Source: Macrostomum lignano (taxonomy: Eukaryota). Taken from it: a DNA stretch of 64,000 bases. The DNA lies in the NCBI GenBank assembly GCA_002269645.1, contig NIVC01000200.1, positions 577,638 through 641,637 of the forward strand, read 5' to 3'. Within the stretch, counting starts at the first letter, position 1. Every line of letters starts with the position of its first letter. The notes under the pieces were generated by a model, which did no database searches, was not told the DNA's origin, and saw only the letters and a list, made by a program, of their open reading frames with translations. Positions 4,441-64,000 of the stretch are shown here, piece after piece. The translations under genes and the position numbers were made by a program.

Positions 4441-4469
4441 ATAAGCTTGGCTACATGTTTAGGATTATT

Positions 4470-13165: not shown

Positions 13166-34164
<20,999 letters not shown>

Positions 34165-34560: not shown

Positions 34561-35066
34561 TGTTTGTGCCCTATTTTTTTACCCCCGTGTGTAAGGCAAC
34601 TAAGCAATGTGAGGTCTATTAGACAGTCTGATCTGGTATGACCTTATAATATTTATGACCTTTTTTGACAATCGTGGTACACTGCTTACACCAGTTAAGA
34701 GGCTCTTCGCCCATATGCTTCAGCATCACTTTAGAAGGCAAACATGGAATATTATTGTCTTAATGTTGCTTGATAATCTAGATCAATTTCCTAGACTTTT
34801 GTAGACTTTTGTAGTTAAGACATTATTATTTGCTTGTAACAATCGCCCAATCTAGTCATCAATCAATATTTAAAAATAAAATGATTTGCACAAACTCTTA
34901 AAGTAGCAATGCACCCTGACAGTCACTTGCACATGCCGATCAGAGTCACATTGTAGCAATCGAACTTTGCTAGTGCACCTGCAACTTCACTTCCAAAATA
35001 TAAATCATTTGACGACTAAAGTTCAAAGTGCGGCTTCTGTGAACGTTTTTTTCTACTAAATATTTT

Positions 35067-39889: not shown

Positions 39890-40565
39890 AGCCTCTGTCT
39901 CTTTAGTTGGAGCCCGTGTCTCTTTAGTCGGAGCCTCTGTCTCTTGGTGGGCACTCCTGTCTCTTGGTGGGCACTCCTGTCTCTTGGTGAGCGCCCCTGT
40001 CTCTTGGTGGGCGCTCCTGTCTCTTGGTGGGCGCCCCTGTCTCTTGGTGGGCACTCCTGTCTCTTGGTGGGCGCCCCTGTCTCTTGGTGGGCGCCCCTGT
40101 CTCTTGGTGAGCGCCCCTGTCTCTTGGTGGGCACTCCTGTCTCTTGGTGGGCACTCCTGTCTCTTGGTGGGCGCCCCTGTCTCTTGGTGGGCGCCCCTGT
40201 CTCTTGGTGAGCGCCCCTGTCTCTTGGTGGGCGCCCCTGTCTCTTGGTGGGCGCCCCTGTCTCTTGGTGGGCGCCCCTGTCTCTTGGTGGGCGCTCCTGT
40301 CTCTTGGTGAGCGCCCCTGTCTCTTGGTGGGCGCTCCTGTCTCTTGGTGAGCGCCCCTGTCTCTTGGTGGGCGCCCCTGTCTCTTGGTGGGCGCTCCTGT
40401 CTCTTGGTGAGCGCCCCTGTCTCTTGGTGGGCGCCCCTGTCTCTTGGTGGGCGCCCCTGTCTCGGGGGGTCTCCCTGCCCCTGTCTCTTGGTGGGCGCCC
40501 CTGTCTCTTGGTGGGCGCCCCTGTCTCTTGGTGGGCGCCCCTGTCTCGGGGGGTCTCCCTGCCCC
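39890..40565. repeat. 20-bp minisatellite (GTCTCTTGGTGGGCGCCCCT)
   Basis: About 32 units; source of several overlapping spurious ORFs. Confidence 0.95.
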
Positions 40566-41820: not shown

Positions 41821-43158
41821 TAACAATATGTTAACAAGTTACTTGACTAATTTACATGTAGCATCTGACAGAGGGTAGCGATTAGTGTGCATCCATCTAT
41901 TATAATTATCCGAAATCATTACCTACACGCTTAGATTCATCTCGATAAAATATTATTTTGACGAAGTAGTTACTAAGATTTAGGCAAAAATAACAGAATA
42001 ATGTACGTTCACTGAACCTGCAGAGTACGACCCCATAGCTCTCTTGCCTTCCATACTAACATCAAAATCAATAAATACACGACTTATTTGTCTCAAAGCT
42101 GAATAACATTAATAAATGGTTGAAAAAGCGATTTGCGTTCGTCTAACTTAACGTTAATTTTGTTTAAATGAAGATTTTCCAATTTAGAAGCAGAATGAGA
42201 TAGACACTCGAGTTTCTCCACAGAATTTGTCTATGGCGAAACCCCATTGAGTGCTATGCGATCTCTTAAATCGTATGTATATTATAGCTCGAAGCGTCCT
42301 TCACTGCAGTTATCCATGGTTAAAAAAAGTTAGGATAGAGCTAGATTAAGTAATGCAGTCAGGAAAAATAAGCAGCCTAATAAAGTTAATCGGCGTAATT
42401 ATATCGTGAAGTTAACGTGCTGGAATAAGAAAATTTAAACACACGGATAAGTGCAGACTCGATCTAATCTTTTAGCAATAAGCAAGTGCGAATAGGTTCG
42501 AAAACGATCGCTGTTAAGGAAATAAGCACAGACAGGATGCTGGAGTGACAGAATGCTGGCGGAGCAGTCTGTAGGCTCTGATAATCCAGAAGTTTCGCTG
42601 TCATATTTGATGTAACTAGCTGGTATCGTCCAGAGTTAGGACAGCAAGTCTCCGCCGGTGGGTCGATCGTCGGCACGGTCCCGGGAGTAGAGTAGAGTCG
42701 CGAGCGGTGCATTGTAGCTAGCTAGCTTGCGTAAGAACCAAAGCAGGAGTGCAGGGACCCAGATGGCTGAAGACTTTGAATTCAAAATGTCAACAGTTTA
42801 TAAACATGTAGAATCCCAAAGTCGGTCACGTGACGCACTCCAAGGTCGTTGCCATGACACCTCTCTTCGATTGGACACCGGTGCCTTAGCGTCACTGTAC
42901 TGTAACTAAAAAAAGAAATATCTCGAGAGGATCGCGTGCAAAAGTAAGGAAAATTGAGGAAGAATATGGGGATTGGTTGCCCAGACAATGTAGGCTCCGT
43001 TCCAATTAAAATAGGAATGAAGCTCTACGGTCTCCAGAAGGTGCAGATGAAAATATTCAATCAATTTTTATTTAATTTTTTTTGTCAGAAGCAAACCCTT
43101 AATTCCTGTACTGTGTCCTCATGATTCTTGATCTGCACATGAAGAAAAGTCTGCACAT

Positions 43159-45081
43159 TCACCCTGCAGTGGAAACCTTTCTAAACGTGTGCCGCAGACA
43201 ATTTGGCACGCAGGCACAATCGGCGTCTTCACTGCTAATACTGCAGTTGCAGTTGTTGTTTCCGTTGTTATTATTCGGCTTGCAATTCGAGCAGAGTCGA
43301 GACAGGGTGCGCCGCATTATCACCAATGGGCGATGCTTCTTGAAGACTTTGAAGAACCGACTTCGAACCAGCGCTGTCTGACTTGGCCAATAAAAGTTTA
43401 AAATGGTCTGACGAAATTCGAAATTCTTCTGCAGCAAGTCTATCTGTTGGGTCAGTAGAGCTACGCCAAAGTTTAACACAAAGACTGCTACTAGAAGAAA
43501 CGTGCCCACTAGAGGCAGCAACGAGATGTAGTCGCTCACGCCAGGAAAGCTGGCGAGGCTGAATGCGCAGCGAAACGTACGGCCAATGTACTCCACGACG
43601 CAAGCCCACGAGTAAAACGAGCATTCGATGAAAGGTTGGCTAAAAATCATTGTAACGCAAACCATTGACACCGGGAGCATTACGATAATCGTTACCTTTA
43701 TTGTTGCGCTCATGCAGAAGGCAAGCTTGAAAAACACCTGATGAAATGAACTCATTTCGCACATGAAGAAGTACAGCATGAGAAACGAAAACAAGATGTT
43801 GCACACAATGATGGTCTGCAGACGAGTTGGATCCACAATCAGACGACCGTCGAGTTCAAAGTAGCTCGCAGGATCGTTAAAAAAGCTCTGCTCCAAGACA
43901 ATTGACAAAATCTGTTGGAAAAGGAAAACAATCAAAGACAGTTCTGTTAACCTTATCCCTCTCATTGCCAGAGCATCTTTACACAATTGCAGTCCAGTGT
44001 GACGCTTGCGCACCAACTTAAGCTGGCTTCGAAAGTCCGTCACTCTGGTAACTATCCAACAGGGTAGGAATAGTAAAAACCATGCCTGAAGAACAATTCG
44101 CAGGTACAAGACGGGCCTGAACCCGGATACGACAGAGGCTGGAATGAGCTGAAGATAAGACTGATTGGAATTGTCTGTACCAGCAAGGAACACCTGCACA
44201 TTGGAGTCGAACGTGTCCCTCGTGAATATCCGAACCATAAGTGTCAACAGCTCTGTCGTGTACAGAAACAAATAATAGAACAGTGTCACTAAAGACATTG
44301 CTTGACTCTTTTTCAGGTGCACAATGCTGGTGAAGTAGGCCTGTGTTGCCGGACTATTGTAAAAGCAAACATAGCCACTGGAAATGTTCTCACTCAGAAT
44401 GACTTGTCCGAGCCTGGTCAGATGCTGGAACGGAGATTTTAGGAATCGGTCACCGCCGTCGCTGCAGTAGCAGGAGAGGTCGAACTCCTGGATAGTCAGG
44501 CTCGGATCCGTTGGATGCCTCCGTTCTTTGAGTAGGTAGCCGGGAGCGTTGGCGAACGCAGCGGCCAGATGAAAGCAGTCTCTGGCAGCAGCGTACTCAA
44601 GAACTGTCAAGCATTCGTCGGTCATTTCTACAGTGAGCAGTCGAGTACACGAGTCTCCATGCCGACGAGAGAGGCGGACAAAGAATCTGGCCAGCTGCAT
44701 CTCGTCAGTGGAACAGGCCAGACTGGAACAGCAGAAGTCAACCAGTTGGAACAAGGCGCATCTAGCGGTGTCCCACAAGTCGAGACTGACGATGAGGTCG
44801 ATTGTCTCGCTGACCAACTTGTCGTCTCTCGATAGCAGAATGAGACCAAATGGCGACATCTTGAAGTGTTTGTCATCGAGCTCACCGTCCGGAACTGCAT
44901 CATCGTCGCGGCGGTCGCTGTCGCAGCAGAACCGACAGTCGTTGTGCCGAAGGCGAAGCAACTCAACGGGTCGACGCTTCAAAGCGGCCAGGAACTGGTC
45001 GAGATTGCTGTCGCACAGCAGCTCCATGGTCTCAAAGTCCGCATCGGTGACCAGCTCATCCACTGTATCGTGCATGCTCAA
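43159..45081 (-). CDS. Divergent TRPV-like ion channel (copy A), single large coding exon, 640 aa; an upstream exon is possible
   Basis: Helical ankyrin-like N-terminus (LTVLEYAAARDCFHL), TIQEFDLS resembling the TRPV linker YDL motif, about six hydrophobic segments, pore-helix-like YIGRTFRCAFSL, and S6 FLLVAVFVLNFGVALL resembling TRP LMLNLLIAMM. Family call is by eye. Confidence 0.65.
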   Translation of the reverse strand: MSMHDTVDELVTDADFETMELLCDSNLDQFLAALKRRPVELLRLRHNDCRFCCDSDRRDDDAVPDGELDDKHFKMSPFGLILLSRDDKLVSETIDLIVSLDLWDTARCALFQLVDFCCSSLACSTDEMQLARFFVRLSRRHGDSCTRLLTVEMTDECLTVLEYAAARDCFHLAAAFANAPGYLLKERRHPTDPSLTIQEFDLSCYCSDGGDRFLKSPFQHLTRLGQVILSENISSGYVCFYNSPATQAYFTSIVHLKKSQAMSLVTLFYYLFLYTTELLTLMVRIFTRDTFDSNVQVFLAGTDNSNQSYLQLIPASVVSGFRPVLYLRIVLQAWFLLFLPCWIVTRVTDFRSQLKLVRKRHTGLQLCKDALAMRGIRLTELSLIVFLFQQILSIVLEQSFFNDPASYFELDGRLIVDPTRLQTIIVCNILFSFLMLYFFMCEMSSFHQVFFKLAFCMSATIKVTIIVMLPVSMVCVTMIFSQPFIECSFYSWACVVEYIGRTFRCAFSLASFPGVSDYISLLPLVGTFLLVAVFVLNFGVALLTQQIDLLQKNFEFRQTILNFYWPSQTALVRSRFFKVFKKHRPLVIMRRTLSRLCSNCKPNNNNGNNNCNCSISSEDADCACVPNCLRHTFRKVSTAG

Positions 45082-45917
45082 AACTTGTGTAGTCTTTGTT
45101 AAGCTTTGCGTGATAGTGAACTTCGCTGCAGTTGCTAGAAAGTCAAACTGACAAAAAAGTTAGCAACTGCGGGCTAACCAAATACTGCTTTATAACCGGA
45201 TTGTGTATTGACTTGATTAGTCCAGAGTCCATATTACCCGATCCCTTTTTCTGCAGATACTATATTGACTCTCAATCATCTGACTTAATAAACTTTATTT
45301 TGCTTTGTAACTGTCAGCTCCCGCAATCATCTAATTAATTAGTATTTGGAAGCGGCTCGTGGACTCTACCAACGAAATACCGGTATTTTTATTACTTAGC
45401 TATAGCCATCACTACAGTCAATAAAAGCTAGCTTTAACAGTAGGAATGCCAAGCCATTTTTCCGCCCTCGAACTACCAAGAGGGGGAATTCCCCCCCCCC
45501 TGACAATTTTTTTGCTGTGCCGGAACGGAGCAACGCAGGCACACGAAATTCAAGAACACGGGTAAACCTTTTGTTGCGCTTCTTCTTAAGCAAGAATCAA
45601 GTCGCCAGCCCTCCAGACCGTCGAGATATTCAACGATTCTGCCAGAAGGTCGGATTTTTCCCGTAAGCGCTAGTGTAATCAGTACACCCCCCGAAAAAAA
45701 AGTATCCCACCGAAAAGGCTCCCACCGAAAAAATCGATAGTATGTGAAGGTGAAGGGGAACAGGATAGTGGGTACAGAGCATTTTACTGGTCCTGGGGTT
45801 TCTAATCCACCTTTTATATGCGTTCAAATAAGCCATTCTCTCAGTGCTAAAACAACACAAAATTTACCTACCTACTAGAATCAAACCGATTTAATTTAAG
45901 CAACTTTGTATCAAGCG

Positions 45918-48272
45918 ATGGAAGAAGTTAATTCCTCCAAGCCGTCGAAGACTCAAAAATGTGGCAGCTATTGCAGTGCTTTTGGTTGCACGAATAGCGC
46001 AGCTTCCACTTCCGGTCGAGTCTCCTTCCATTCCTTTCCCCAAGGACGATGAGACGAAGAAGAAGTGGGTCGCAGCACTGAGGCGAAAAGACTTCAAACC
46101 GTCAAAAAGTTCAAAAGACTGCTCAGAACACTTTTCTGAGTCTTGTTTCAAGGAGCAGTTTGAAGGCTTCTTGCCCAACGCCAGGAGACAGTGTACGCTG
46201 TTCCTTCGATCTTTCCTGCGTTTCCAGAACATCTGCAGCCAGCTCAGAAGAAGAGAAAGACAATCACAGCAGGTGCGGTCACTCGAGAAGTTGATTTTGA
46301 AATATTTCAGGCGCCTCAAGAAGGCAACGAGACGAAATCTGATTTGGAAGCCATGACTATCAATGACGGACTTCCTCAGCCAGACCTTCATGCCAACTGT
46401 GTAATGTAAACAGGGAAGATTTCAATCAGGCTTTCCAAGAACTTTCTCATCGATGCAGCTCCGACGATGGCACAGCCTTTGACTACTGCAATGTAGTGGC
46501 CGATGAGATGTCATTGGAATCAATGATTGAATGGAATTCGAATGAAGGCATGTTCTTCGGCTATGCTGACAAAGGGGATGGCAAGGCAAGTGATCAGGAG
46601 GCGACGTCGGCATTGGTAGTGATGGCTGTGGGTCTGAAGAACTATTGGAAGTTGCCATTGGGTTATATTCTAGTAAATGGTGTGGATGGTGAATTTTTGT
46701 CTAGTGTTGTAGAAGAATCAATTCAGAGGCTTTATCAGGTTGGCGTTTTCGCCACATCGTTCACATGCGATGGAACGCAGCACAACATTCGAGCTATTGA
46801 ACTTCTTGGGGCTAAAATTAGTTCTCCGGACTCAATTGTCGCCACGTTCCCTCATCCTTGTGACCCAAGCATTCAGGTTTCTGCCTTCCTCGATCCGCCT
46901 CATATGTTGAAGCTGATTCGCAATCAGTGGCAATCAATGGGCACGATAGTTTGGCCGAATAGGGGGAATATTGATTGGAAATATGTTTCACTATTGCAGC
47001 AAGTTCAGGAGAGTTACGGGCACAAACTGGGAAATAAACTAAGCAGGCATCACATCAACTTTGCCAATTTAAAGATGAAGGTCTATTTGGCATCCCAGCG
47101 GCTGCGTCGCAAGTTTTGTCAGCAAATTTTGGCCGGATTCGAGCACCATGATGTACTTGTGACGGCAGATTTTATTGAGCACATGAATGACTTGTTCGAC
47201 GCTTTTAACTCCAAGCGACTAGTAAATTACGGGGCCAAAATGGCTCTAAGAGCTGACAACCAGTCGGACTTTGACTTCTTTACTGACTCCATTAAGCTTC
47301 TCGGAAGTCTTGAAAATCTGTCTGGACGCAAAATTGTTGAAACTGCAAAGAAAACAGGCTTTCTCGGCTTCATTGTGAATTGTGAGGCTGTTATGGACCT
47401 TGCCAAGTATTTTTTTTCAAGTTGTGCTTTTTTCTTTCTTTGCACTTACAAATTGTCGCAGGATTTTCTTGAGTTATTTTTTAATGCCATCAGACTTCAA
47501 AACGGCTGGAATCACAATCCAACTCCGAGACAGTTTCGCTCAGCCTTTAGACAGTTACTAGTGCACGCTGGAGGTGGAATTCTCCAATCGACTAGTCCCA
47601 ATGTTAAGCAACAGGATGCCTTTATTCAGTTGTCATTATCTTGTCTGCCTTCGTCACAATCAACAGAGGCAGGAAAACCTCAATGGAAGCAGATAAGTGC
47701 TCAGAACAGTTTGGGTTTAAGCCTTAATTCTATTCAACATTGTATGAATGCATCAAAATGCGAAGTATGCCAGTCGATTGTGTATAACATTGCAGGCGCA
47801 ATGGTCCGTAGCATGCTAAAATTAATTGAATGCGCCCCGTGCAGATCAGCACTCATTTCCAGCACTGAAATGTCAGCAGCTTCACGGTTGCCCTGCTCTC
47901 TTGTCACCATGAAAAATGTGCTGAATAAAGAAGGGACTGGGGGTTGATTTTTCCAAGCAGCAATCTCTTGCAAGTTTTGCTTCATGCCGAAACAATCATT
48001 CGACTTTCAAACTATAGCAGCGGATTTTCTAGCGATTTGGCTGTCCAGGAGACGTTGCGCATATGTCAGTTGATGCATTTCCCGAACTTGACTTGCATTC
48101 CGCAGCTGCCAGCATTGGCATTGAATCCCACAAGCTTCATCTGATTTGCATCATGGCGCTGTTCTACATGCGGGTTCGAATGAAGAAGGTGGCGAAAGAC
48201 CTTTCATGTCCCAGAAGAAAATCAGGAAAGAGACAAAAGCTTCTACGAACGGCGGTATTTCTTAATCTGTAG
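45918..48272 (+). pseudogene. THAP9/P-element-like transposase remnant, frameshifted and internally deleted
   Basis: THAP domain (YCSAFGC...FHSFP / W...C.EHF / AVPSIFP) split by frameshifts; core ADEMSL, TCDG, FLDPPHMLKLIRN, YKLSQDFLELFFNAIR..NG.NHNPT..QF; C-terminal H.LI..Y..R..K region in shifted frames. TIRs not identified. Confidence 0.88.
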
Positions 48273-49454
48273 TTTAGCCTATTCTAGTGGATACCTGGTA
48301 AGTTGAACTCATTATTTTGATTTTGCAAGTTTTTATACAGACAAGCTTTAATTAAATTAAAAGTCTTTAGAAAGAATCTCTTGAAAAATATTTACAAATG
48401 AGTCTAAAAAGCTATGATAATATTTTTTGTTGGTGTTGTGCCCTGTAGGAACCGAAAAGCAAACCAGTGAAAGTGCAGTTTAGGAAGGGAAATTCTCTAC
48501 CCACTATATCGACTGCGGAGGGGGGGTTGGCTGGGTGCCATTTTTATAACTGGGAAAGAGGCACACTTTTTGTACTCTCCATGCGCAGTCTAGGCTTACT
48601 TCTTGGTCTGTGGTTTAGACCCACCCTTGCGTGGCTGGCGCTCTGCCTCCCCCATTGTGCCTCTAGAGCCCCTCCCTCCCCTCACTGGCGGCAGACCGTG
48701 ATTGGCTGCTGCCCGGCAGACAGACAGCCATTACCCACCCTGCATTCTGCCTGCTGTCTAGCCCCAGTTCCTACGGGTATATATGTGAAAATGTTGTTTA
48801 CGCACCACTTGCCATCCAACACTCGTACATTTATATCACAGACGACATTCCGCGAATTAGGTTTCTATAGTCAACAGCTTCAACACTGAAGAGGTGCGTA
48901 AAATGTTAAAGATTTTCTGCGGCGGAATGGCGCAACAACGAATGACACAAAAAAGTTTATTGCATCTTGTTCCATCTACAAGGACACCAAAAGAAAAGAA
49001 GCTCGCTATGAGGCCTGCCGAATTTGGGCTAGATACATGCGCTGATCACTGATAGGAGCTTGAAGGTACACATGGCCAGCAGAAATTACCAACATCTTCG
49101 AAAAATCACTGGTGGCAGGGCTGTTGACGCACCGCCTGTAAGTATAGATGTACTGTACAGGAAATGCTTGCGAAAAAATATTGTCATATTTTTATTTCTA
49201 TTGCAGCCAGAAGGAGCAAGACAGATTTCCGGCCACGAATTTGTTGTGCATGTCATCAGAAAATTGAAGGATATTTGAAGATGATGAAAAACGTTGCGAT
49301 TGTTCGAGGATTTCTTGCGAGTGTACAGTAGTAGCTATCGTGCTTTTACGCTAATTTTTGTTTGTTTTTTTCTTATAATACTATAGTAGTTAGCTTTACT
49401 TAATCCTAAATTCCATTTAAGTGACAGTGAATTCAATAGGTTTTTTTATTTTTT

Positions 49455-50218
49455 AAAAGCAAAACCCTTTCTGCCTAAAAATTGGTTTTAATATTATAGT
49501 TGAATAAACTAAACAGCTTGTCAAATAAATTTGTATGTATAAAAGTATGTGTATTAATACTAAAAATATACAGAAACATAAGTTCAAGCTTAACTATAGC
49601 AATGCCCGTGCTTAAAATAATTTTAAGAGCTCCATAAATGTTAAGATCATGATGAAAAATCACACTCGGGTGTCCTTACTCACCTGGTGCCACCTGTTGA
49701 AGGTGCCGACAGCGTCGGGGTGATGACGGAATGCTTGAGAGACTAGCTGAGGATGTTCAGCAATTGAGGCTTGCCCACTGTCGAGGCTTGATCGGCGAAA
49801 CTAGAGAAATCCGCATCAGGGTGCTCATAGTCACCTTGCGCCACCTGTTGAAGGTCCAGAAGCTCCGCCTGGGTAAAGGCCAGTGACCAATGAAGTCAGA
49901 GCTGATGCAGACACATGTGGTCGACGTGTTGATGAAATTTGGAGGCTTGGCAAGGCTGCACTGAGGCGCAAGGCTGATTGGCGCACAGGGGTGTACTGAT
50001 TACACTAGCGCTTATGGGAAAAATCCGACCTTCTGGCAGAATCATCGAATATCTCGACGGTCTGGAGGGCTGGCGACTTGATTCTTGCTTAAGAAGGAGC
50101 GCAACAAAAGGTTTACCCGTGTTCTTGAATTTCGTGTGCCTGCGTTGCTCCGTTCCGGCGCAGCAAAAAATTGTCAGGAGGAGGGATGGGGATTTTTCCC
50201 CCTTTCTTGGAAGTTCTA
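49455..50218 (-). repeat. Dispersed ~770-bp unit X: inverted copy here, direct copy at 62934-63705, partial direct copy at ~45451-45690
   Basis: Reverse-complement match, including GGTGTACTGATTACACTAGCGCTT...GGAACGGAGCAACGCAGGCACACGAAATTCAAGAACACGGG. Confidence 0.88.
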
Positions 50219-50399
50219 CTGTTAATAATGCATTCCTATATTGGACTGGCAAACATAACACAATCGGAGTGGATGTGCAGGTAGCAGGGTTTCTCTGCAG
50301 GGTCTGCAGGGTCTGCAGGGTTTTCAGGGTTTCAGATATCTCAGAAAATCACAATCAGCTTCTTTCACAATTCCTACGCTTTGTGTCTCCGAAAACCTA

Positions 50400-51039
50400 T
50401 ACTCAGCAACAGTCAAAAGTTCCACCCTCCAAATTGCGAAAACTTAACACTCACAATTCAATCCTCAAGTTACGCAACTAAGCCGCCGCGAGGAAGGGAA
50501 AGTTGCTTGAATATCAATACTTATAGTTGACGTCAGTCGCACAAAATCATAATTTTTTAAGCAATATTCAGTTAGGATCGCGATGCGTGTGGGATCCCCT
50601 CGCACGCAGAAGTGCGACGACTCTGCGGGGCATCCCAAGGATGAGGCAGCGCAGAAAGTCCCGAGGGAGCTGCTCCAAAGCGTTTTCAATGGCATGACGC
50701 AGAGCTCTCCGCAACATTCTGCGGTAGATTATCTTTTCGAATGCTTCGTTTTAGGAAGTCCCAGACATGCTCGATGGGATTCATGTCTGGGGACCGGGAA
50801 GGCCAGCGCAGAGTGCGCAGCTGTAGCTGTTCCTTCAGTTGACTAACAGCATCGGCTTGGTGTGGCGGGGCGTTGTTCCTGGGCTTGGGTCTGCTTAATG
50901 TCCAGGCCTGGACCATTAAGCAGACCCAAGCCACCCCCAAGCGGCAATAAGCTTTGCGCGTGCCGTAGGTTGCGTCACTCACAATATGCGAAAAAATCAT
51001 CTCGCTTAGTGGAGTGGAACATTTGACTGTTGCTGAGTA
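50400..51039 (-). mobile_element. Tc1/mariner deletion derivative 1 (640 bp)
   Basis: TIRs TACTCAGCAACAGTCAAA / TTTGACTGTTGCTGAGTA, TA duplication, transposase C-terminal fragment NNAPPH...WPSRSPDMNPIEHVWD. Confidence 0.9.
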
Positions 51040-51054
51040 TATATCACCGAAGCA

Positions 51055-51156
51055 GGCACACAAGAACGCGCGGAAACGCAGTCATACGCACAGGCACACA
51101 CTCAGGAATGAACAGCAGCCCTAACTTTATTTATCGTTAGGCATGTACACTTCACT
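51055..51156 (-). mobile_element. Fragment of the SINE central domain
   Basis: Shares GCAGGCACACACTC...GCCCTAACTTTAT...GTTAGGCATGTACACTTCACT with 37330-37440. Confidence 0.7.
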
Positions 51157-51175
51157 AGGGCACTAATGGATCATC

Positions 51176-51211
51176 GCCTGATGATGCCACATGTGTGGCG
51201 AAACATGTCGC
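51176..51211 (+). ncRNA. Minimal type I hammerhead ribozyme motif 1 (Penelope-like/retrozyme type)
   Basis: gc-CTGATGA-t-GCCAC-atgt-GTGGC-GAAAC-at-GTC-gc: full catalytic core, 5-bp stem II, minimal palindromic helix III (ACATGT), 2-bp stem I; predicted cleavage after C51209. Confidence 0.75.
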
Positions 51212-51223
51212 TAAGCTAAAATA

Positions 51224-51834
51224 TACTCAGCAACAGCTAAACCCCCCCCCCAACTCACGCTGCCACACGGGCACAAAAGTTAAGCAATGTCTTTAATTCC
51301 AGTCTCAGTATCGTGTGTAGGAACCACGAGCATGCAAAAGTGCCGTGACTCGTCGTGGCATCCTGATCACCAGCCGGTTGATGAACTCTTGGGGCAGCTG
51401 CTGCCAGGCATTCAGCACCGCCAGTCGCAACTTTTCAGCATTCTGTGGGGCATCCTGCTGAACTCTTCGCTTTACAAAGTCCCAGACATGCTCGATGGGG
51501 TTCATGTCTGGAGACTTTGACGGCCAGTTCAATGTGCGAATGCCGAGCTGCTCCAGCAGCTGCACGTGTGCTACTCGATGTGGCGCAGCGTTGTCGTCTT
51601 CAAGCATGCAGTTCTGCGGGCCGCCAAAGGTTGTCGTAGCAAATGGCAGAAACTTTGCAGCAATGCAGCCACCAGTGGGTTGAGTTGCGCCACCCCCTCC
51701 CCAAATCCCCCATGCCGCACTTTGCGCTCGCGTCTGGCGGCGGCAGCCTTCACACATTTCTGAGTCACCGATGGCATACAAAACTTTTAGGCCGTGTGAC
51801 AGCGTGAGTTGGGGGGTTTAGCTGTTGCTGAGTA
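51224..51834 (-). mobile_element. Tc1/mariner deletion derivative 2 (611 bp)
   Basis: About 40-bp TIRs (TACTCAGCAACAGCTAAACCCCC..CAACTCACGCTG), TA duplication, fragment EDDNAAPH...WPSKSPDMNPIEHVWD; the paralogous empty site near 59318 has a single TA. Confidence 0.9.
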
Positions 51835-52411
51835 TATATCGTTCATAATCATCTTGTAAGATAACGCTTCAAATGATAACGTTGTTATTATTACGAGCGT
51901 ATTAGGCGTAGCAACCTACCAAAGCTATTCAAATTACAGAAAGAAACAGAGCAGAAAATGGCACAAGATTGCGCAAATGTTCGGGTGCAGTACGCTCGTA
52001 AAAACAGAAAAAAGATTATATGTGCTTGACTACTATGGTAAGTAGAATATGACATAAATATGATCAGAGAGTGAGGCGCGTATGCAAGTATGATGGTGCG
52101 AATATTAGCGCCGGCCCTCCAAGCCAATGAAGGCAATTCCCAAGATTGGAGAAAGAAAGGGAGGCGGTGTGAAGGAAATGAAGTGATATGATTCGGTATT
52201 TACAGGGCTACATTATTCTTCTCCTAAAACAGTGCAAGGTAGCCGTGCTAACCAAAAAATAATGTAGCACTACGAGTATACGGCGTCCAAGGTCCAAAAA
52301 ATTATAATTACAACATTTAGCCAAATAATTAATTTCGCTTTTGTCAAAAACAAAACTCCGGGAACTGCTTTCACTGGTGCTTAATCTGCACATGATGAAG
52401 CGTCGGCGCAT

Positions 52412-52434
52412 TCACCCTGCAGTGGAAACCTTTC
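52412..52434 (-). pseudogene. 3'-terminal fragment of a third TRPV-like copy (…RKVSTAG*), interrupted by BEL element 2 and continued at 59109-59120
   Basis: TCACCCTGCAGTGGAAACCTTTC | BEL | ATTTC TAAACGTGTGCCG matches the copy A and B C-terminus; downstream flank 51846-52411 matches 59333-59890. Confidence 0.8.
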
Positions 52435-53483
52435 TGTACTGTAGAAATGAAGAGACCGATGGTCCGCCAAACTATTTTGGAGCTGAGGCTCAAGCGAGAC
52501 GCTAACAAAACGAAAAACGTAAACAGTACACAGGGCTCGCAAGCCCTCTCGATGCTATATTTATTTGCAAGTCAGCCAGAATATCAGTCAGCGGTGGGGG
52601 GTGGGTGAAATGGGCCTGAGCTAGACCCGCGTACATAGCGAAATGAATAAAGCAGTACATTAAATCATGCAATGGAAAGAAAATCAATAAGTTAATAATC
52701 TACCTCCCAAACATACCCCCCACCTTGGCATAACAATGACAAAAAACTATTCGAAGGATGATGGGATGAAATAAAAAACGAATATTAGAAAAGTATTCGA
52801 AAATTATGCATGATGCAAAATCAAATGCAAAAGCAAACAAGCAAACGTGGCATGAACATTGATGGCGACATTGTGAATGGTAGAAATTAGAGCAAAATAT
52901 GAAGATAAATACGCAGATCGTAGATGACAATCGAAAATTTTGCAAAAGTACGTCAGCTATCAAGAAAAATTCAAAATTGAACACGAACGCAGACTTCCGC
53001 CACCAAACGCAACTGAAACAAAAACTTAAACAATAATTGTAAGCATTGGACTATCAAAAGGTCGTAACTGGTGCAAAACTATGGAAAAACTATGCAAAAC
53101 TACTTCTAAGCGCAGAAAATCAAGAAATATTAAGTAGAGCTCAAAGAATGCAAACATCGCTCGTAAAAAACTCAAAAAGCGCAAAAGACAAACCTTGCCA
53201 ACAAATTCAATAGACCGTAACGTCCATCCAGCAAAAATTCACGTAAGAAAATATATAAATAATAAATAATGAATGTTATTCGCATTGCAAACTGAATACA
53301 AAAATTGGGTTATGACTGCAACACAGGGTGAATCCTATTAGCAGGAAAGAGAAAAAAGACAATACGAACAATTCAAAAAACAGGAAAATTGAAAAACTCA
53401 TCAGAAGAATTGCAAAACCTGACAAAGTCAAATTCTCTAGCAAAGGTTCGCAAACTAACCTGCAGATATTGGACACAATTTTG

Positions 53484-56400
53484 TTATTGGTTCATCATTG
53501 TGCGATCACCGACTCTGATTGAGGCGACTCTCACGTGACCGTCCGAACCGCGCATGACCTCCAGCACGCGAGCCAGCGGCCAGTGACCCCGAGGCGAGTC
53601 GGGGCTCACCAGCAGCGCCACGTCTCCAGGTTGTAGGTCAGGCAGCTCGCGGCGCCACTTGCTCCGCGGTGCGAGTCCCGGCAGCCACTCGCGCAACCAC
53701 CGGCGCCAGATCTGCGACACCAGCTGCTGAACGTGACGCCATCTTTTGAAGGACTGCGGGCGATGGCAGCGTCGACCTCCGGTGCAAACTTCCCGCCGAC
53801 TTGCCCGATGAGGAAGTGATTCGGCGTCAGCGGCACATCATCACTCGGATGCGCCGTCTGGTACGTCAACGGCCTTGAATTCAGAAGTGCCTCCGCTCCA
53901 GCAAACGCGCTTAGCAGCTCCTCATCCGTGACGTCCGCCTCCTTCAGAACTGCCCAGATTGCCTTCTTCGCTGCTTTGATCATGATTTCGTGCACCCCAC
54001 CGAAGTGCGGCGCAGCGGGCGGGTTGAAATGCCATCGCAACTGCTGAGAAGCCGTTCGCTGTTGAAGCTTCTGGGTATCCAAGACGTCGACTAGTTCTCG
54101 AAGCTCGCGCGCCGCACCGACGAAGTTCGTGCCGTTTTCCGAGAACAGCTCGATCGGTTGGCCTCGTCGACTGATCATCCGCTGTAGAGTCCGTAGGAAG
54201 GAATCGGTATCCATGCCGAATGCCACTTCCAGATGTACAGCTCGCGTTGCCAAGCAGGTGAACAATGCCAGGTACCTTTTCTGCCGAGCCTTGCCACGGC
54301 CCTGCTTGGTGATGAATGGACCGGCAAAGTCGACAGCGACCCGAGCGAAGGCACGAAGCGGCTCCTTGAATCGGCAAGCGGGAAAGGGGGGCCATAATCT
54401 GGCTGGCTGGTCTGGCTTTCCGTCGGCGACATTCGGCGCACTTTGCTTCCCAAGACTTGATGGCTTCTCTGGCCGAGATGATCCAAAATCGGTTTGACAG
54501 TGCCACCAGAGTTTGGTTTGTGCCTAGATGTTGGACACTTTCGTGGTGATGCTTCACGATGAGCTCCGTCACGCGGTGTGATCTTGGCAGAATGATGGGA
54601 AATCGAGCGCTAAACGGTAGCACATCGGCGAACTTTAGTCTCCCATCAGCGCGAAGCAGGTCGTTGACGTCGAGCTTCGGGTTCAAGTTAGAAATCACAC
54701 TGCGTCCCGGCAACTGCTTTCCTGCTCGCAGACAAGCGATCTCTTCCGCAAACGTTTCTTTCTGGGCTCTCTGGATGATCTTCGATTCAGCTGCTTCAAT
54801 CTCTGCTGGTGATAGCTCGCCAGTATCTCGGTGTCTTCATCAAACGGCAGTTGTTAGCGAACCTGGCCACCCAAGCGTGAACACGGACAGCTCTGATCCA
54901 GCTGGAGAAGCGCTCTGGCTCCAGTCGATGATTGCGCTCTAGCACATCGGTGACATACGTTCTCTGGCTCTCACCGGCCGGCGACTGATCCTCGCATCTG
55001 CGTCTCTCTTCCACCTGCTCAGGAACCTGCACTTTGTTACTTTGTTCTTTGGCCAATTCTCTGCCTCTTCTAAGAGAAACTGAGGTCCATGCCACCACAA
55101 CTGGCTAGCCGCCACTGCCTTGATCGATAGTCCTCGAGAGAGCAGATCTGCCGGATTCTTTTCCGTCGAAACATATCTCCACTGGTTCGGCTCCGTTGAA
55201 GCTTGGATCTCGCCCACTCGAGAGGAGACAAACGGCTTGAACATTTTTCCTCGGCCACGAATCCAGTACAACACGTTTAAGCTGTCAGACCAAAAAACTG
55301 CGTCACGAAGCGGCACTTGCAATGACTGCGCTACTTTGCTTGCGAGTTGGACTCCCAGAACTGCTGCCATCAGCTCCAACCTCGGTGTACTCATGGTTGT
55401 GATTGGAGCTACTCGAGTCTTCGAGATGATAAGTCGAACAGAACGTTCACTGTCAGTTGCCGTTTCACTTCTCCAGTAGCATACAGCTCCGTAAGCTTTC
55501 TCGGATGCGTCAACGAACACGTGCAGACTACCCGACAGGGAATTTTCTCCTTCAAGCGCCCTGGAAAGCCGAATCTCGCTTAATGCTTCAGGTCAATACA
55601 CCAGGCGCTCACTCTCGCACTAAGTTCTGCATTCAGCGGTTCATCCCAATCAATACCTGTCTGCCAAAGCTCCTGCATCAGAATCTTCGCCTGCACGACA
55701 AATGGAGAGATCAGTCCAAGTGGATCAAAGACGCTCGCTAGCTTCTTCAGCAGACCTCTTTTTGTGGTCACCTGACGCGACTCGTTTTCATCTTTAAAGG
55801 TAAATTCGTCCTGCTCACTCTGCCACGTGACACCCAGTGTCTTGGTGCTTGGTAGTTCTTTGCTGTCCAAGGTAACTTCTGCTGCACGGTCTTCAGGCGG
55901 GATTCTATCGAGCACAGCTCTCGAGTTCGAGACCCACTTGCGCGCGTGCATGCCGGCGCGCCTCCAGAGCTCACTGAGTTGATCGTACAGCCTGCAGGCG
56001 GCTGCCTCGGTGGGCGCAGAGTCCAGGCTGTCATCCATATAGGTAGAGTGCAGTACTGTCTCGGCCGCCTTGGAAGCTCACCTTTTAACTTTTCAGCATG
56101 GCAGCGGGTAACGAACTGTGCCAAGAAAGGAGAGCTGGTGACGCCGAACACCACTCTGTTGAACTCGTAGACATCCGGTTGCTTTGAAGGATCGGCGTCC
56201 CGCCAAGGAAACTGTGCAGCGGCCTGTCCTTCGGATCCATCTCGATCTGAGATACATTTCCGCTACATCGCATGCGATCGCAATCGGGTGTCGGCGGAAC
56301 CGAAGCAGCACGTCAACCAAATCCCTCTGCAGTTTGGGACCCTGGAGGATCTGCTCGTTCAATCTGGCAGCCGATGCATCAAAGACTATCCGCACTTTTG

Positions 56401-58756
56401 TTGTAGCCTTGTCTGGCCGCAGCACTGGGAAGTGAGGCAGGAAACAGCGGTCTTCAGTCTCAGCTTGCGACACTTTTCGGATATAACCTTGCTGTTCATA
56501 CTTTTCAAGGATCTCCTGATACTGCTTGCAGACGTGCACATCATTAATCAGCCGCTGTTCGGTGTTCTTTAGTCGCTTCAAGGCCATTGAGAAAGTGCCT
56601 GCTGGAGCCAGCCGATCCTTTTTCCATGGAATCCCGATCTGGTAACGGCCCTTCATGTACTTCAGCGACGACTTGGCTTGCTGGACGGCTCTCTCTTCAT
56701 CGGCGGTCAGCGGACTTCGATTGGCACCTTCTGAGACGTTCTCGATCTCCCAAAACTGCCGCAGGATCTTAGCCACCTGACCAGATTCGGAATCGCAGCT
56801 GAAGAAAGTGGCAGCGAAATGGGCGTTCTGCATCTCAGAATTGTCCTGCTCTGTGCGACCGATGCGCGTCCAACCCAGGGGAGTCAGGCGCGCCTTTGGC
56901 TCCAGCGGCTGTCCGACGATTTCCTTGAGGGACACGTGAAGATCCGGGTGATCAGCACCAATCAGCAAGTCCACTACTGCAGGCTCACACAGCTTCGGAA
57001 ACGGCACATTTCTCAGATGAGGCCACTGCTGCGCTTCTTCGTGCCAGTCGACGCCTTTGAGGGACCCGGTCACGTGATCAGCGGTGAAGGCGACGATCAT
57101 TAAGCTGGTCTGACCATCCAGACTTTCCAAGCTAAAGCAGACTGGGGCTGTCATGAAGATCTCTGTTTGGCCATTGATGACTCCGACTTTCACCTTTTCG
57201 AGCGCTCCATGCACTCCAAGCGCCTCTGCTATCCCGATGTTGATGTAGCTCTTGGTACTGGCATCGTCGAGCAAGGCGTTCACCTTCAGCTTCCGGGACC
57301 CGTTCCGTAGGACTACAGGCACCGTTCGTAACGAGATTGCCATTTCACCAGCTGACAGAAGCGTCACCGGTCCAGTCTTTCCTGAACTGGAAGCGGATTT
57401 AGCGTCCTTGGATGCAGTCTGCTTCGCTTCACCAGACTTGGCCAACACTTTTTCTGCATGAAGCAGGCGATGATGGAACTTTGTGCAGCTTTCGAGCTCT
57501 GCGCCGCGTCCCAGCGTTTTTCCACCGGAAGCTCCTTGAACTCACTGCAGGACCACAGCTCGTGATCACCTTGACAAACAATGCAAATCTTTCGCTGTAC
57601 CTTCTTGTCACTGTCCGTAGTAACGAAAGTCTTTGGTCGCTGCTCTCGCTTTTGACGCTCCTGCTGCACGGTGGCAACGCCCTGCACAATCTCTGACGCT
57701 TCAGTCTGAAACTCTGCTTCTTGCAGCACCCAAATTCTCAGATTTCTAACACTCTGCGGCTTCCGCTGCTTAAAGATCCACCTCCGGAAGCTGGTAACCA
57801 TCTGCTCAGGCAACTTTTTCTGCAGCCTCACATACAACATCCCATCTTGAAGCTCTGCCTCTTTACCCGCACCCTCAAGGTTAACGACAGCCACATCCAG
57901 TAGATTAGCAAAGCTTTTGAGATCCTTGGCGTTTCCATTTCGCACGATCGGGAAGCTGTCCAGCTCTTCCAAGTGCAGAGCAAGTTGCCTACACTGTCCA
58001 CCAAATTCTCTCTCTAGTCTCTCTTTTGCAGCCTCATATGCAGCAGCGGAGTGTCCTAGATGTTCTTTAACCTTCAAAGCTTCACCGCTGAGGTACTGCT
58101 TAAGCTGCAGCAACTTGAATTCTGGTGTTGCAGGGCGCTGTCGATGCACGCAACAAAGGCTGCCTTCCAGTTTTCATACTTCTGCTTTTCTCCACTAAAC
58201 GTTGGGATTTCAACACGCTTCAGCATCTTCCACAAATCCTTTGAAAGCTCCTTCGCGTTGGATCCTTTGCTGGACGCAGCACTGCCAGAAAGTTTGTCTA
58301 ACTCACCAGCTGCTTCTTCTTGGTCACCCGCAGCGTTCTCACCGCTTGAACTCGCGGCAGGAGGGGCTTCTTGGGCGCGCTGCAATCCCCGGTTTCTGGA
58401 ACTTTCGACGCGCTGAATGGCAGCTTGGTAGTCACGCTCAGTCTCCTCCATCTCTTCTAGTAGGCGCTGTCGCCTCTCGTTGTCCTTGGCGTCGGCGTAG
58501 CTTGATGCAGTTCTTCCTGGATGGCGCTGACCAGGTCCTGCAGGTCGGATAGAGCGTCGCAGGCAGCTTGCACTTCGTCATCAGAGGCGCGCGTCTTTAG
58601 CAGCCAAGACAGCTTGTTTTTGCAACGAGTGAACACTGATTTTTTCCGGGATTTCTCGAAGCGCAGCTTCTCTAAACGCAGCGCGCCGGCATCGTCTTGG
58701 GCTTCCTGCTGTTGTTCATTGGCGTCGTCACTGTCCATCTTGGTCCTTCGTTTCAC
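53484..58756 (-). pseudogene. BEL/Pao gag-pol of element 2, fragmented by roughly ten frameshifts
   Basis: IPTFSGEK gag, LLDDASTKSY protease, FGVTSSPFLAQ and MDDSLDS RT, FVDASEKAYG RNaseH, HLGTNQT..C.EC, FTCLATRAVHLE integrase, [10 protein letters not shown] end, spread over many short ORFs. Confidence 0.92.
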
Positions 58757-58803
58757 AGTAGGATTCTATTGCTTGCCACGTCAGTGGTAAGTTAGGCTTG
58801 TCC

Positions 58804-58821
58804 AACCACGCTCTGCTACCA
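58804..58821 (-). promoter_or_regulatory. PBS TGGTAGCAGAGCGTGGTT (tRNA-iMet), identical to element 1
   Basis: 18/18 identity with 31125-31142; 3 nt from the LTR. Confidence 0.85.
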
Positions 58822-59271
58822 AAATGTACTGTAGAAATGAAGAGACCGATGGTCCGCCAAACTATTTTGGAGCTGAGGCTCAAGCGAGACGCTAACAAAA
58901 CGAAAAACGTAAACAGTACACAGGGCTCGCAAGCCCTCTCGATGCTATATTTATTTGCAAGTCAGCCAGAATATCAGTCAGCGGTGGGGGGTGGGTGAAA
59001 TGGGCCTGAGCTAGACCCGCGTACATAGCGAACTGAATAAAGCAGTACATTAAATCATGCGATGGAAAGAAAATCAATAAGTTAATAATCTACCTCCCAA
59101 ACAATTTCTAAACGTGTGCCGGGCGCGTCTGGACAGACATTACAAGATAATAAAAGTCAGGTGAACGTCATTTACCGTGCGTTCACCTACCACAACTTTT
59201 GTTAGAATTTCACCCCTTCTTTTCATCCACTTATTTTTTTCTAGGCCTGCTTTAGCCTATCAGAACTCATC

Positions 59272-59307
59272 GCCTGACGATGCCACATGTGTGGCGAAAC
59301 ATGTCGC
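59272..59307 (+). ncRNA. Minimal type I hammerhead ribozyme motif 2
   Basis: gc-CTGACGA-t-GCCAC-atgt-GTGGC-GAAAC-at-GTC-gc; differs from motif 1 only at the free N7 position; predicted cleavage after C59305. Confidence 0.75.
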
Positions 59308-59892
59308 TAAGCTAAAATAATCAAGATGATTCATAATCATTTTGTAAGATAACGCCTCAAATGATAACGTTGTTATTATTACGAGCGTATTAGGCGTAGC
59401 AACCTACCAAAGCTATTTAAATTACAGAAAGAAACAGAGCAGAAAATGGCACAAAATTGCGCAAATGTTCGGGTGCAGTACGCTCGTTAAAACAGAAAAA
59501 AGATTATATGTGCTTGACTACTATGGTAAGTAGAATATGATATAAATATGATCAGAGAGTCAGGCGCGTATGCAAGTATGATGGTGCGAATATTAGGGCC
59601 CTCCAAGCCAATGAAGGCAATTGCCAAGATTGGAGGAAGAAAGGGAGGCGGTGTGAAGAAATGAAGTGATATTCGGTATTTACAGGGCTACATTATTCTC
59701 TCCTAAAACAGTGCAAGGTAGCCGTGCTAACCAAAAAATAATGTAGCACTACGAGTATACGGCGTCCAAGGTCCAAAAAGTTTATAATTACAATATTTAG
59801 CCAAATAATTAATTTCGCTTTTGTCAAAAAACAAAACTCCGGGAACTGTTTTCACTGGTTCTTATTCTGCACATGATGAAGCGTCGGCACAT

Positions 59893-61834
59893 TCACCCTG
59901 CTGTGGAAACCTTTCTAAACGTGTGCCGCAGACAATTTGGCACGCAGGCACAATCGGCGTCTTCACTGCTAATACTGCAGTTGTTGTTCCCGTTGTTATT
60001 ATTAGGCTTGCAATTCGAGCAGAGTCGAGACAGGGTGCGCCGCATTATCACCGATGGGCGATGCTTCTTGAAGGCTTTGAAGAACCGACTTCGAACCAGC
60101 TCTATCTGACTTGGCCAATAAAAGTTTAAAATGGTCTGACGAAATTCGAAATTCTTCTGCAGCAAGTCGATCTGTTGGGTCAGTAGAGCTACGCCAAAGT
60201 TTAACACAAAGACTGCTACTAGAAGAAACGTGCCCACTAGAGGCAGCAACGAGATGTAGTCGCTCACGCCAGGAAAGCTGGCGAGGCTGAATGCGCAGCG
60301 AAACGTACGCCAATGTACTCCACGACGCAAGCCCACGAGTAAAACGAGCATTCGATGAAAGGTTGGCTAAAAATCATTGTAACGCAAACCATTGACACCG
60401 GGAGCATTACGATAATCGTTACCTTTATTGTTGCGCTCATGCAGAAGGCAAGCTTGAAAAACACCTGATGAAATGAACTCATTTCGCACATGAAGAAGTA
60501 CAGCATGAGAAAAGAAAACAAGATGTTGCACACAATGATGGTCTGCAGACGAGTTGGATCCACAATCAGACGACCGTCGAGTTCAAAGTAGCTCGCAGGA
60601 TCGTTAAAAAAGCTCTGCTCCAAGACAATTGACAAAATCTGTTGGAAAATGAATACAATAAAGAATAGTTCTGTTAACCTTACTCCTCTCATTGCCAGAG
60701 TATCTTTGCACAATTGCAGTCCAGTGTGACGCTTGCGCACCAACTTAAGTTGGCTTCGATAATCCATCAATCTAGTAACTATCCAAGACGACAGAAACAG
60801 TATGAATACTACCTGGAGACTGATGCGCAGGTACAAGACGGGCCTGAACCCGGATACGACAGAAGCTGGAATGAGCTGAAGATAAGACTGATTGGAATTG
60901 TCTGTACCAGCAAGGAACACCTGCACATTGGAGTCGAACGTGTCCCTCGTGAATATCCGAACCATAAGTGTCAACAGCTCTGTCGGTACAGAAAAAATAA
61001 TAGAACAGTGACACAAACGACATTGCTTGACTCTTTTTCAGGTGCAAAATGCTGGTGAAGTAGGCCTGTGTTGCCGGACTATTGTAAAAGCAAACATAGC
61101 CACTAGGAATGTTCTCACTCAGAATGACTTGTCCGAGCCTGGTCAGATGCTGGAACGGAGATTTTAGGAATCGGTCTCCGCCGTCGCTGCAGTAGCAGGA
61201 GAGGTCGAACTCCTGGATAGTCAGGCTCGGATCCGTTGGATGCCTCCGTTCTTTGAGTAGGTAGCCGGGAGCGTTGGCGAACGCAGCGGCCAGATGAAAG
61301 CAGTCTCTGGCAGCAGCGTACTCAAGCGCTGTCAAGCATTCGTCTGTCATTTCTACAGTGAGCAGTCGAGCACACGAGTCTCCATGCTGACGAGAGAGGC
61401 GGACAAAGAATCTGGCCAGCTGCATCTCGTCAGTGGAACAGCCCAGACTGGAGCAGCAGAAGTCAACCAGTTGGAACAAGGCGCATCTAGCGGTGTCCAC
61501 AAGTCGAGACTGACGATGAGGTCGATTGTCTCGCTGACCAACTTGTCGTCTCTCGATAGCAGAATGAGACCAAATGGCGACATCTTGAAGTGTTCGTCAT
61601 CGAGCTCACCGTCCGGAACTGCATCATCGTCGCGGCGGTCGCTGTCGCAGCAGAACCGACAGTCGTTGTGCGAAGGCGAAGCAACTCGACAGGTCGACGC
61701 TTCAAAGCGGCCAGGAACTGGTCGAAACTGCTGTCGCACAGCAGCTCCATGGTCTCAAAGTCCGCATCGGTGACCAGCTCATCCACTGTATCGTGCATGC
61801 TCAAAACTTGTGTAGTCTTCGTTAAGCTTTGCAT
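59893..61834 (-). pseudogene. TRPV-like copy B, frameshifted paralog of 43159-45081
   Basis: Highly similar to copy A but split across ORFs 61487-61834, 61353-61739, 60772-61500, 60264-61016 and 59893-60351 by mostly single-base deletions, which may be assembly errors. Confidence 0.8.
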
Positions 61835-62929: not shown

Positions 62930-64000
62930 GCCAAGCCATTTTCCGCCGATCGAACTACCAAGAGGGGGGAATTCCCCCCCCCCCTGAAAGTTTTTTGCTG
63001 CGCCGGAACGGAGCAACGCAGGCACACGAATTCAAGAACACGGGTAAACATTTTGTTTGCGCTCCTTCTTAAGCAAGAATCAAGTCGCCAGCCCTCCAGA
63101 CCGTCGAGATATTCGATGATTCTGCCAGGTCGGATTTTTCCCACAAGCGCTAGTGTATTCAGTACACCCCTGTGCGCCAATCAGCCCTGCGCCTCAGTGC
63201 CGCCTTGCCAAACTCCAAATTTCATCAACACGTCGACCACATATTTCTGCATCAGCTGTGACTTCGTTGGTCACTGCCTTCACCCAGGCCGAGCTTCTGG
63301 ACCTTCAACTGGTGGCGCAAGGTGACTATGAGCACCCTGATGCGAATTTCTCTAGTTTCGCCGATCAAGCTCGACAGTGGGCAAGCCTCAATTGCTGAAA
63401 ATCCTCAGCTAGTCTCTCGAGCATTCCGTCATCACCCCGACCGTCGGCCTTCAACAGGTGGCACCAGGTGAGTAAGGACACCCGAGTGTGATTTTTCATC
63501 ATGCTCTTAACATTTATGGAGCTCTTAAAATTATTTTAAGCACGGGCATTGCTAAAGTTAAGCTTGAACTTATGTTGCTGTATATTTTTAGTATTATTAC
63601 ACATACTTTTATACGTACATACATATTTTATTTGACAAGTTGTTTAGTTTTTTCAACCATAATATTAAACCCAATTTTTAGGCAGCAAGGGTTATGCTTT
63701 TAAAAAATTAGCGGCTTGCGGAAAAACGTAGTAAGTTGCAAGCGAGAAACGAAAAAGTTTATTAGGCTTTACGCGTCAGGTATAAATTTAAGCACGCGAT
63801 CACATGGGGAGGTGCGCCAAAAAGGGGTACGAACCGCCCCCCCCGACTTAGCATATTGAGTGTCTGTCCGAGTACACCCACCCCCGCTTGGCGAGCAGGG
63901 GGTTTCAGTGCAGATGTACACGCAATCGCTGGCTGCGTGCTGATTGGGCCGCCACACAGCTCCCCAAGCACCGAGCTATGTGTCGAAAATCGTTGAGCGG

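Follow-up and report, generated by a model that had tools for sequence, protein, structure and literature searches.

What is the origin of two short, nearly identical sequences with the form of a hammerhead ribozyme that lie in a 64,000-nucleotide (nt) stretch of Macrostomum lignano contig NIVC01000200.1, and are they, as a first-pass annotation proposed, a pair of self-cleaving RNA motifs belonging to a non-autonomous mobile element? The whole of this stretch is referred to here as the window, all positions are given in its numbering, and both motifs are on the + strand. The answer reached is that they probably represent, though by no means certainly, one solitary minimal type I hammerhead relic derived from a Penelope-like element (PLE), which a duplication copied together with the DNA around it and which probably retains little activity or none. 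Such a relic implies no present-day function.

Copy 1 occupies 51178-51209 and copy 2 occupies 59274-59305, with predicted cuts after C51209 and C59305 respectively. In its context (51170-51217) copy 1 reads ...AUCAUCGC-CUGAUGA-U-GCCAC-AUGU-GUGGC-GAAA-CAUG-U-C-GCUAAGC..., and copy 2 is the same save for a C at N7 (59278). The catalytic core is complete in both (C3-U4-G5-A6-N7-G8-A9, G12-A13-A14 and A15.1...U16.1-H17) and the topology is that of a type I hammerhead. One unpaired U (U51185 in copy 1, U59281 in copy 2) stands between A9 and G10.1, helix II is formed by five Watson-Crick pairs (GCCAC/GUGGC) closed by G10.1-C11.1 and capped by the loop AUGU, and helix III is the palindrome ACAUGU, with the 4-nt self-complementary insert CAUG, through which an intermolecular helix is possible. 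The first-pass annotation had recorded the CUGANGA/GAAA/GUC core, the G-C-closed stem II of 5 base pairs (bp), the extra nucleotide after A9 and the ACAUGU palindrome, and all are present at both sites; its statement that N7 is the only difference is also true across the shared 53-nt block (U51182 versus C59278). Helix I has only two contiguous pairs (GC/GC), as had likewise been noticed, and three of the five helix I pairs modelled in the covariance model R1 described below can form. A longer stem I, between TCATC (59267-59271) and GATGA (59325-59329), was seen as described and is confined to copy 2; it was rejected as part of the structure because it occurs in that copy only and would need a one-sided loop of about 17 nt, and in copy 1 the same TCATC pairs instead with the GAUGA of the catalytic core.

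The first consideration in judging such a motif is how readily it would turn up by chance. An exact pattern search found CTGANGANGCCACATGTGTGGCGAAACATGTC only at the two sites, on the + strand, and not once in 100 shuffled sequences, and a search of both strands tolerating three mismatches returned the same two sites and again nothing in 100 shuffles. A relaxed hammerhead descriptor made for this analysis picked out these two sites alone in the window; it found a match in 2.75% of 400 Markov-shuffled windows, or in 0.75% when a palindromic helix III was added, and the strict motif (helix II of at least 5 bp together with a palindromic helix III) was found in none of the 400 shuffled 64-kb windows. 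For this purpose the two sites are a single evolutionary event and not an independent pair.

Recognised hammerhead models offered no help. The Rfam families (Hammerhead_1, Hammerhead_3, Hammerhead_II, HH9 and HH10), run over 200-nt pieces of the window, gave no match at the gathering threshold or at E <= 10, which counts against a hammerhead of PLE origin, though with little weight; the Rfam 15 models also miss every one of the PLE-adjacent reference hammerheads described below, even at E <= 1, so that their silence is uninformative for the class of minimal hammerhead ribozymes (min-HHRs), and the PLE-adjacent class appears to be absent from Rfam. Because Rfam gave nothing, an independent covariance model was built. 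Metagenomes were scanned with the pattern CTGANGANGCC-N(4-14)-GGCGAAACATGTC, which fixes the core and 3 bp of helix II (22 fixed bases), and six contigs matched, five of them distinct. Helix II extends past the three forced pairs in four of the five, and two (L008 and L005) adjoin open reading frames (ORFs) of PLEs; those of L005 are fragments, and in L008 the hammerhead follows, 127 nt further on and on the same strand, a 615-aa ORF that bears RVT_1 and GIY...YIG motifs. The same pattern applied to 596 Gb of prokaryotic genomes gave one match, in a bacterial metagenome-assembled genome (MAG; L020) and without extra pairing, which serves as an empirical chance match, and a scan of viral contigs gave none.

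The L008 ORF has 1287 homologues, which carry RVT_1, DUF8422 and HTH_animal domains and in some cases GIY-YIG, and nine further loci were retrieved around eight of them. At five distinct loci (L010, L012, L013, L015 and L018; L014 repeats L013) a hammerhead of the same build lies 130-200 nt past the stop codon of the reverse transcriptase (RT) ORF and on the same strand, with one bulged nucleotide after A9, G10.1-C11.1, a helix II of 3-4 bp, a helix I of 4-5 bp and a helix III insert that is one of the 4-nt palindromes CAUG, CUAG or CCGG. Their alignment supports the structure: 91.7% of cells are paired, a value reached in none of 500 shuffles and approached by no slid register, compensatory changes occur at four of the five helix I pairs, and L013 carries the U3-A8 core covariation known from the literature. 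When L008 is taken together with these five loci, the helix III inserts are CAUG, CUAG, CCGG and CGCG, all self-complementary.

Model R1 was built from the five loci only, with L008 and the window copies left out, and was then applied, with filters off, to the full window. Copy 1 and copy 2 took the first and second ranks, with 20.3 bits (E about 0.002) and 18.8 bits (E about 0.006), E-values that hold for one window and not for a genome, and the third match had 14.0 bits. Every one of the 15 sequences aligned to R1, which include the doubtful L019 and L006 and the bacterial chance match, has the unpaired nucleotide that separates A9 from G10.1. That the motifs are minimal type I hammerheads of the Penelope kind, as the first-pass annotation had stated, was thus supported by a model that had not seen them; from the top rank in R1 and the absence of the strict motif from 400 shuffled windows it follows that the motif fits the published class of PLE min-HHRs in its core, in the bulge after A9, in G10.1-C11.1 and in the self-complementary helix III insert. 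An unpaired nucleotide between A9 and G10.1 has been described for PLE min-HHRs by Cervera and De la Pena (2014, PMC4209133).

A chance resemblance, in which AT-rich intergenic DNA happened to match the hammerhead consensus and was then paired by duplication, is nevertheless an explanation that deserves to be weighed, and it is judged to be rather unlikely. It draws on the fact that the two copies count as one event, on the frequency with which the relaxed descriptor is satisfied in random 64-kb windows, on the bacterial MAG that holds a chance match to 22 fixed bases, on a covariance-model score that is modest, on a helix I that is nearly absent and on the lack of PLE sequence nearby; set against these are the failure of any of the 400 shuffles to yield the strict version, the presence of all the class-specific extras beyond the core (bulge, G10.1-C11.1 and palindrome) and the low E-values within the window. 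Moreover, genomes that bear PLEs hold thousands of mostly solitary motifs of this kind (PMC4209133), so that a real relic is far likelier a priori.

If the motif is a hammerhead, does the presence of two copies reveal anything about an element? The term 'pair' stood in so far as both sites are real, but they arose through one local duplication of 663 nt and not through two insertions of an element. Copy 2 of the duplicated block is uninterrupted (59267-59929, + strand) and starts 7 nt before the hammerhead, beyond which come 0.55 kb of AT-rich DNA without coding sequence (38% GC) and then the end of a gene (59856-59929). Copy 1, also on the + strand, is in three parts: 51171-51223, containing the hammerhead and running up to the TA at which a Tc1-like element inserted; 51837-52434, which matches 59330-59915 with 95.5% identity including indels; and the final 13 nt at 59109-59121, which lie beyond a BEL/Pao insertion and match 59917-59929. 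The first interruption (51224-51834) is an internally deleted Tc1/mariner-like element, a miniature inverted-repeat transposable element (MITE) of 611 bp with 27-nt terminal inverted repeats (TIRs), a TA target duplication and a DDE_3 remnant; it starts 13-14 nt past C51209, in agreement with the Tc1 insertion reported earlier at 13 nt downstream of copy 1. The second (52435-59103, - strand) is a BEL/Pao long terminal repeat (LTR) retrotransposon of 6.67 kb with a DUF1759 gag, Peptidase_A17 and rve in broken frames, and its 279-nt LTRs (52435-52713 and 58825-59103) have two differences, TG...CA ends and flanking TTTC. Between the block copies is a spacer of 145 nt (59122-59266, + strand) that is unique, having no other match in the window. 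Without both insertions the layout would read 129 nt of another repeat, block copy 1, the 145-nt spacer and block copy 2, with the motifs as direct repeats originally about 808 nt apart, a spacing that is now 8.1 kb because the Tc1-like MITE and the BEL/Pao retrotransposon inserted later.

The substitution divergence of the block is 2.9% (19/653) compared with 0.7% between the LTRs, and therefore the duplication is older than the BEL/Pao insertion. At that block divergence the neutral probability of at most one change in 32-53 nt is 0.54-0.76, so that the single change around the motif is what neutrality would predict and the N7-only difference says nothing about selection; indeed the motif is conserved no better than the block around it. 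An empty site or target duplication for the 0.6-kb segment was sought with the spacer (59122-59266), with the DNA just upstream of block copy 1 (51042-51170) and with the flank of the third, partial copy of the region (42600-43121), which match nothing useful.

The right-hand 74 nt of the block (59856-59929) consist of 37 nt of coding end, including the last 11 codons and the stop codon of a single-exon gene on the - strand, and 37 nt of its 3' flank. This gene, which encodes a multi-pass membrane protein, survives here as a disrupted copy in three ORFs (59893-61834, - strand), the 3' end of which overlaps the duplicated block. An intact paralogue of 640 aa (43159-45081, - strand) lies within a third, partial copy of the region (43122-45690) that is 95.7% identical and contains neither the hammerhead nor the 0.59-kb AT-rich segment, similarity falling to background to the left of 43122. 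The protein is without a Pfam domain, and its only detectable homologue is Macrostomum lignano BOX15_Mlig004730g1, at 50% identity over 97% of the length; since the match covers the C-terminal ...NCLRH(T/A)F(R/K)KV(S/A)T, the shared 74 nt are genuine gene sequence. It follows, from a shared block that takes in the host coding end and its 3' flank, that the copies are not two insertions of a mobile element, and the hammerhead pair is the product of a local duplication that carried host gene sequence along. In M. lignano the homologue gene is situated between CUB and ADAM genes at three homeologous loci, and the 22 kb of unique DNA at these loci contains neither a hammerhead nor anything similar to the 0.59-kb AT-rich segment.

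The proximity of the gene raises the idea of a host regulatory ribozyme acting, for example, on an antisense transcript of its 3' region, since the motif shared in the duplication of the gene end and lies, on the other strand, about 590 nt past the stop codon. This is extremely unlikely: the intact paralogue lacks both the motif and the whole 0.59-kb segment, the three M. lignano homologue loci lack the motif and the flank, gene and motif are on opposite strands, and the adjoining gene copy is itself disrupted. For the same reason, namely their absence from the intact paralogue and the three loci, the hammerhead and its 0.6-kb segment were rejected as a conserved flank of the 640-aa gene.

The same block must also be confronted with the proposal that the motifs belong to a non-autonomous element. 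In its fullest form this would be a PLE derivative or retrozyme-like element that is active or was so until recently, present as a head-to-tail dimer with a unit of about 808 nt, processed by double-hammerhead self-cleavage and mobilised by a PLE RT in trans. Once the later insertions are removed the copies are indeed direct repeats at that distance, the motif is of the PLE class on R1, dimers are the presumed working form of PLE hammerheads (PMC4209133), animal retrozymes have been traced to pseudo-LTRs (pLTRs) in a 2026 preprint, and the GC content of the block is low at 38%. However, the repeated block holds 37 nt of conserved host coding sequence with its stop codon, the copies are just two in number and the 145-nt spacer between them is unrepeated, the unit exceeds the 150-450 nt of non-LTR retrozymes, which moreover bear canonical and not minimal hammerheads (PMC7229834), helix I is weak, the predicted folds compete with the hammerhead fold, and the motif is no better conserved than its surroundings. 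Nothing shows the surrounding 0.6 kb to be an element: there is no tandem array, no further copy in the window and no tRNA-like head of the kind found in short interspersed elements (SINEs), ARAGORN finding nothing in the window. This part of the first-pass annotation was therefore not supported, and an element of this kind is considered unlikely. A variant in which the duplicate was made via RNA is less likely still and can be given only a slight chance; here a + strand transcript running from near the hammerhead into the antisense end of the gene would have been reverse transcribed by a PLE RT in trans and reinserted 145 nt upstream, a suggestion prompted by the position of the boundary 7 nt upstream of the hammerhead core and by the piece of neighbouring gene that was carried. 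If true, it would amount to a 'retrozyme' with a long unit (about 0.8 kb) and a minimal hammerhead in macrostomid flatworms, transducing host sequence.

The reading favoured here, a solitary relic of a PLE hammerhead, would involve the following events. A severely truncated PLE, a pLTR fragment or another PLE-derived non-autonomous sequence would have landed in the 3' flank of the gene; the 663-nt stretch with the motif and the gene end was then duplicated locally, and the Tc1-like MITE and the BEL/Pao retrotransposon inserted afterwards. In PLEs the hammerhead is found close to the 3' end of the unit (PMC8557442), and in vitro work on one PLE places the start of reverse transcription about 90 nt past the cut site (PMC8557442, PMC11167929). 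The placement of the motif is easier to reconcile with a very short PLE tail, truncated at its 5' end and lodged in host DNA, than with a mobile unit of 0.6 kb. If the + strand were transcribed, the two motifs could pair through ACAUGU to give a 6-bp intermolecular helix III, and the double hammerhead so formed would cut after C51209 and C59305.

A number of observations weigh against this reading and account for the caution with which it is put forward. The bacterial chance match scores 13.4 bits on R1 and the window copies are only 5-7 bits higher, and at the scale of a whole genome tens of R1 scores as high as theirs could arise by chance. Helix I has 2 contiguous bp where every PLE-adjacent reference has 4-5. 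No match at E <= 0.01 came from a tblastn search of the window with 126 PLE proteins, and the best E reached with a profile built on 107 PLE RTs was 0.22, so that, as had been stated at the outset, the window has no PLE RT or GIY-YIG coding sequence. The homology between the copies extends 0.6 kb downstream of the motif and 7 nt upstream, which does not match the usual place of the hammerhead near the 3' end of a PLE, and the position of the motif 7 nt from the duplication boundary is a coincidence for which the relic offers no explanation. Finally, neither copy, alone or as a dimer, takes a hammerhead-like form at minimum energy, whereas most references do fold as a hammerhead, and the best homodimers (-39.2 and -33.6 kcal/mol) form through the nearly self-complementary GCCACAUGUGUGGC as compared with -22.8 kcal/mol for the double-hammerhead pairing through ACAUGU.

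The predicted folds bear equally on whether the motifs could cleave. In copy 1 (51170-51186) the 5' flank AUCAUC is complementary to GAUGAU of the core and forms a competing hairpin, and the region of the cleavage site is, in either copy, a possible pairing partner for the 3' half of helix II. The U-to-C change at N7 in copy 2 weakens the AUCAUC/GAUGAU hairpin. On these models cleavage competence is doubtful, and cleavage would be expected to be weak or absent because helix I has just two contiguous pairs and the competing folds are stronger.

The remainder of the window is rich in repeats. The region with both hammerheads is bracketed by a 0.76-kb inverted repeat (49448-50216 and 62952-63708; 92% identical), of which a partial third copy is found at 45470-45690; the right arm is about 1.1 kb upstream of the broken gene copy and may have arisen by duplication of 5' sequence flanking the membrane-protein gene. 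Another deleted element of the Tc1 kind (50398-51041), with 28-nt TIRs and a DDE_3 remnant, lies 129 nt upstream of hammerhead copy 1; the TIRs of this element and of the one at 51224-51834 are related. There is also a second BEL/Pao LTR retrotransposon (24413-31416, - strand), with 272-nt LTRs of 99.3% identity and with RVT_1, Peptidase_A17, Integrase_H2C2 and DUF5641 in long ORFs. A 660-aa ORF (PNMA-like gag, zf-CCHC and Integrase_H2C2) is contained between two 196-nt direct repeats that are 99.5% identical (10104-12484) and may represent a short element of the LTR type, or else a gag-int gene that has been domesticated, whilst a 483-aa ORF (46496-47947, + strand) with TNP-like RNase H N and C domains and a GTP-binding insertion domain is a P-element/THAP9-like transposase. 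An uninterrupted 427-aa ORF for a Cys-loop ligand-gated ion channel (7473-8756, + strand; Neur_chan_LBD and Neur_chan_memb) is probably a host gene or exon block. Satellite arrays, whose units measure 33, 48, 23/90, 29 and 20 nt, and arrays of the three tetranucleotides (GTCT)n, (AGTT)n and (TCAG)n, each 1-1.5 kb long, together occupy 1-858, 1571-4444, 4855-6149, 9403-10073, 39891-40547, 18514-20019, 31417-32384 and 35066-36086, and the (GTCT)n array yields spurious long ORFs.

The significance of the motifs is best seen in relation to known systems. Min-HHRs are known by the thousand from many animal genomes, mostly as solitary relics with poor activity in vitro, and the find alone therefore matters little; it is a probable example from a macrostomid-like flatworm lineage, in which none seems to have been described, it belongs to a class that no Rfam model detects, and it illustrates that 'paired' hammerheads can come from segmental duplication and not from the structure of an element. 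Animal non-LTR retrozymes (Cervera and De la Pena 2020, PMC7229834) have type I hammerheads of the canonical form, in which helix I is about 6 bp long and loop 1 contacts loop 2, and consist of tandem monomers of 150-450 nt arranged as dimers to multimers. The locus resembles them in its low-GC direct repeats, its type I hammerhead and its short palindromic helix III (retrozymes act as dimers), but its motif is minimal with a 2-bp helix I, it has just two copies, which were about 808 nt apart before the later insertions, and its repeat takes in host coding sequence. With the SINE-like Sm-alpha elements of Schistosoma it shares a hammerhead in a flatworm repeat, but those have a tRNA-derived head, RNA polymerase III boxes and a canonical hammerhead, whereas the motif here is minimal and is present in the window in two copies only.

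The closest likeness is to the metazoan PLE min-HHRs, including those of Schistosoma mansoni families, most genomic copies of which are solitary and away from an RT ORF (PMC4209133). Unlike those borne by PLEs, the window copies have no pLTR or PLE near them, and helix I has 2 contiguous bp where 4-5 are usual and 2 have been reported only for a Drosophila virilis variant; helix II, at 5 bp, is shorter than the 7-8 bp of the S. mansoni families and falls within the 3-6 bp of the metagenome PLE set. The metagenome PLE hammerheads differ in lying 130-200 nt after a same-strand RT ORF, in having a covarying helix I of 4-5 bp and in mostly adopting the hammerhead as their minimum-energy fold, none of which applies to the window copies, but their core architecture and spacing are the same (L008, L010, L012, L013, L015 and L018), and the identical segment GAAACAUGU that L008 and L012 have in common is a further likeness. 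With the published min-HHRs the window copies share the type I topology, the CUGANGA/GAAA/UH core, the unpaired nucleotide between A9 and G10.1, the G10.1-C11.1 pair, a helix III palindrome that can pair only between two molecules, and a solitary position with no RT ORF near.

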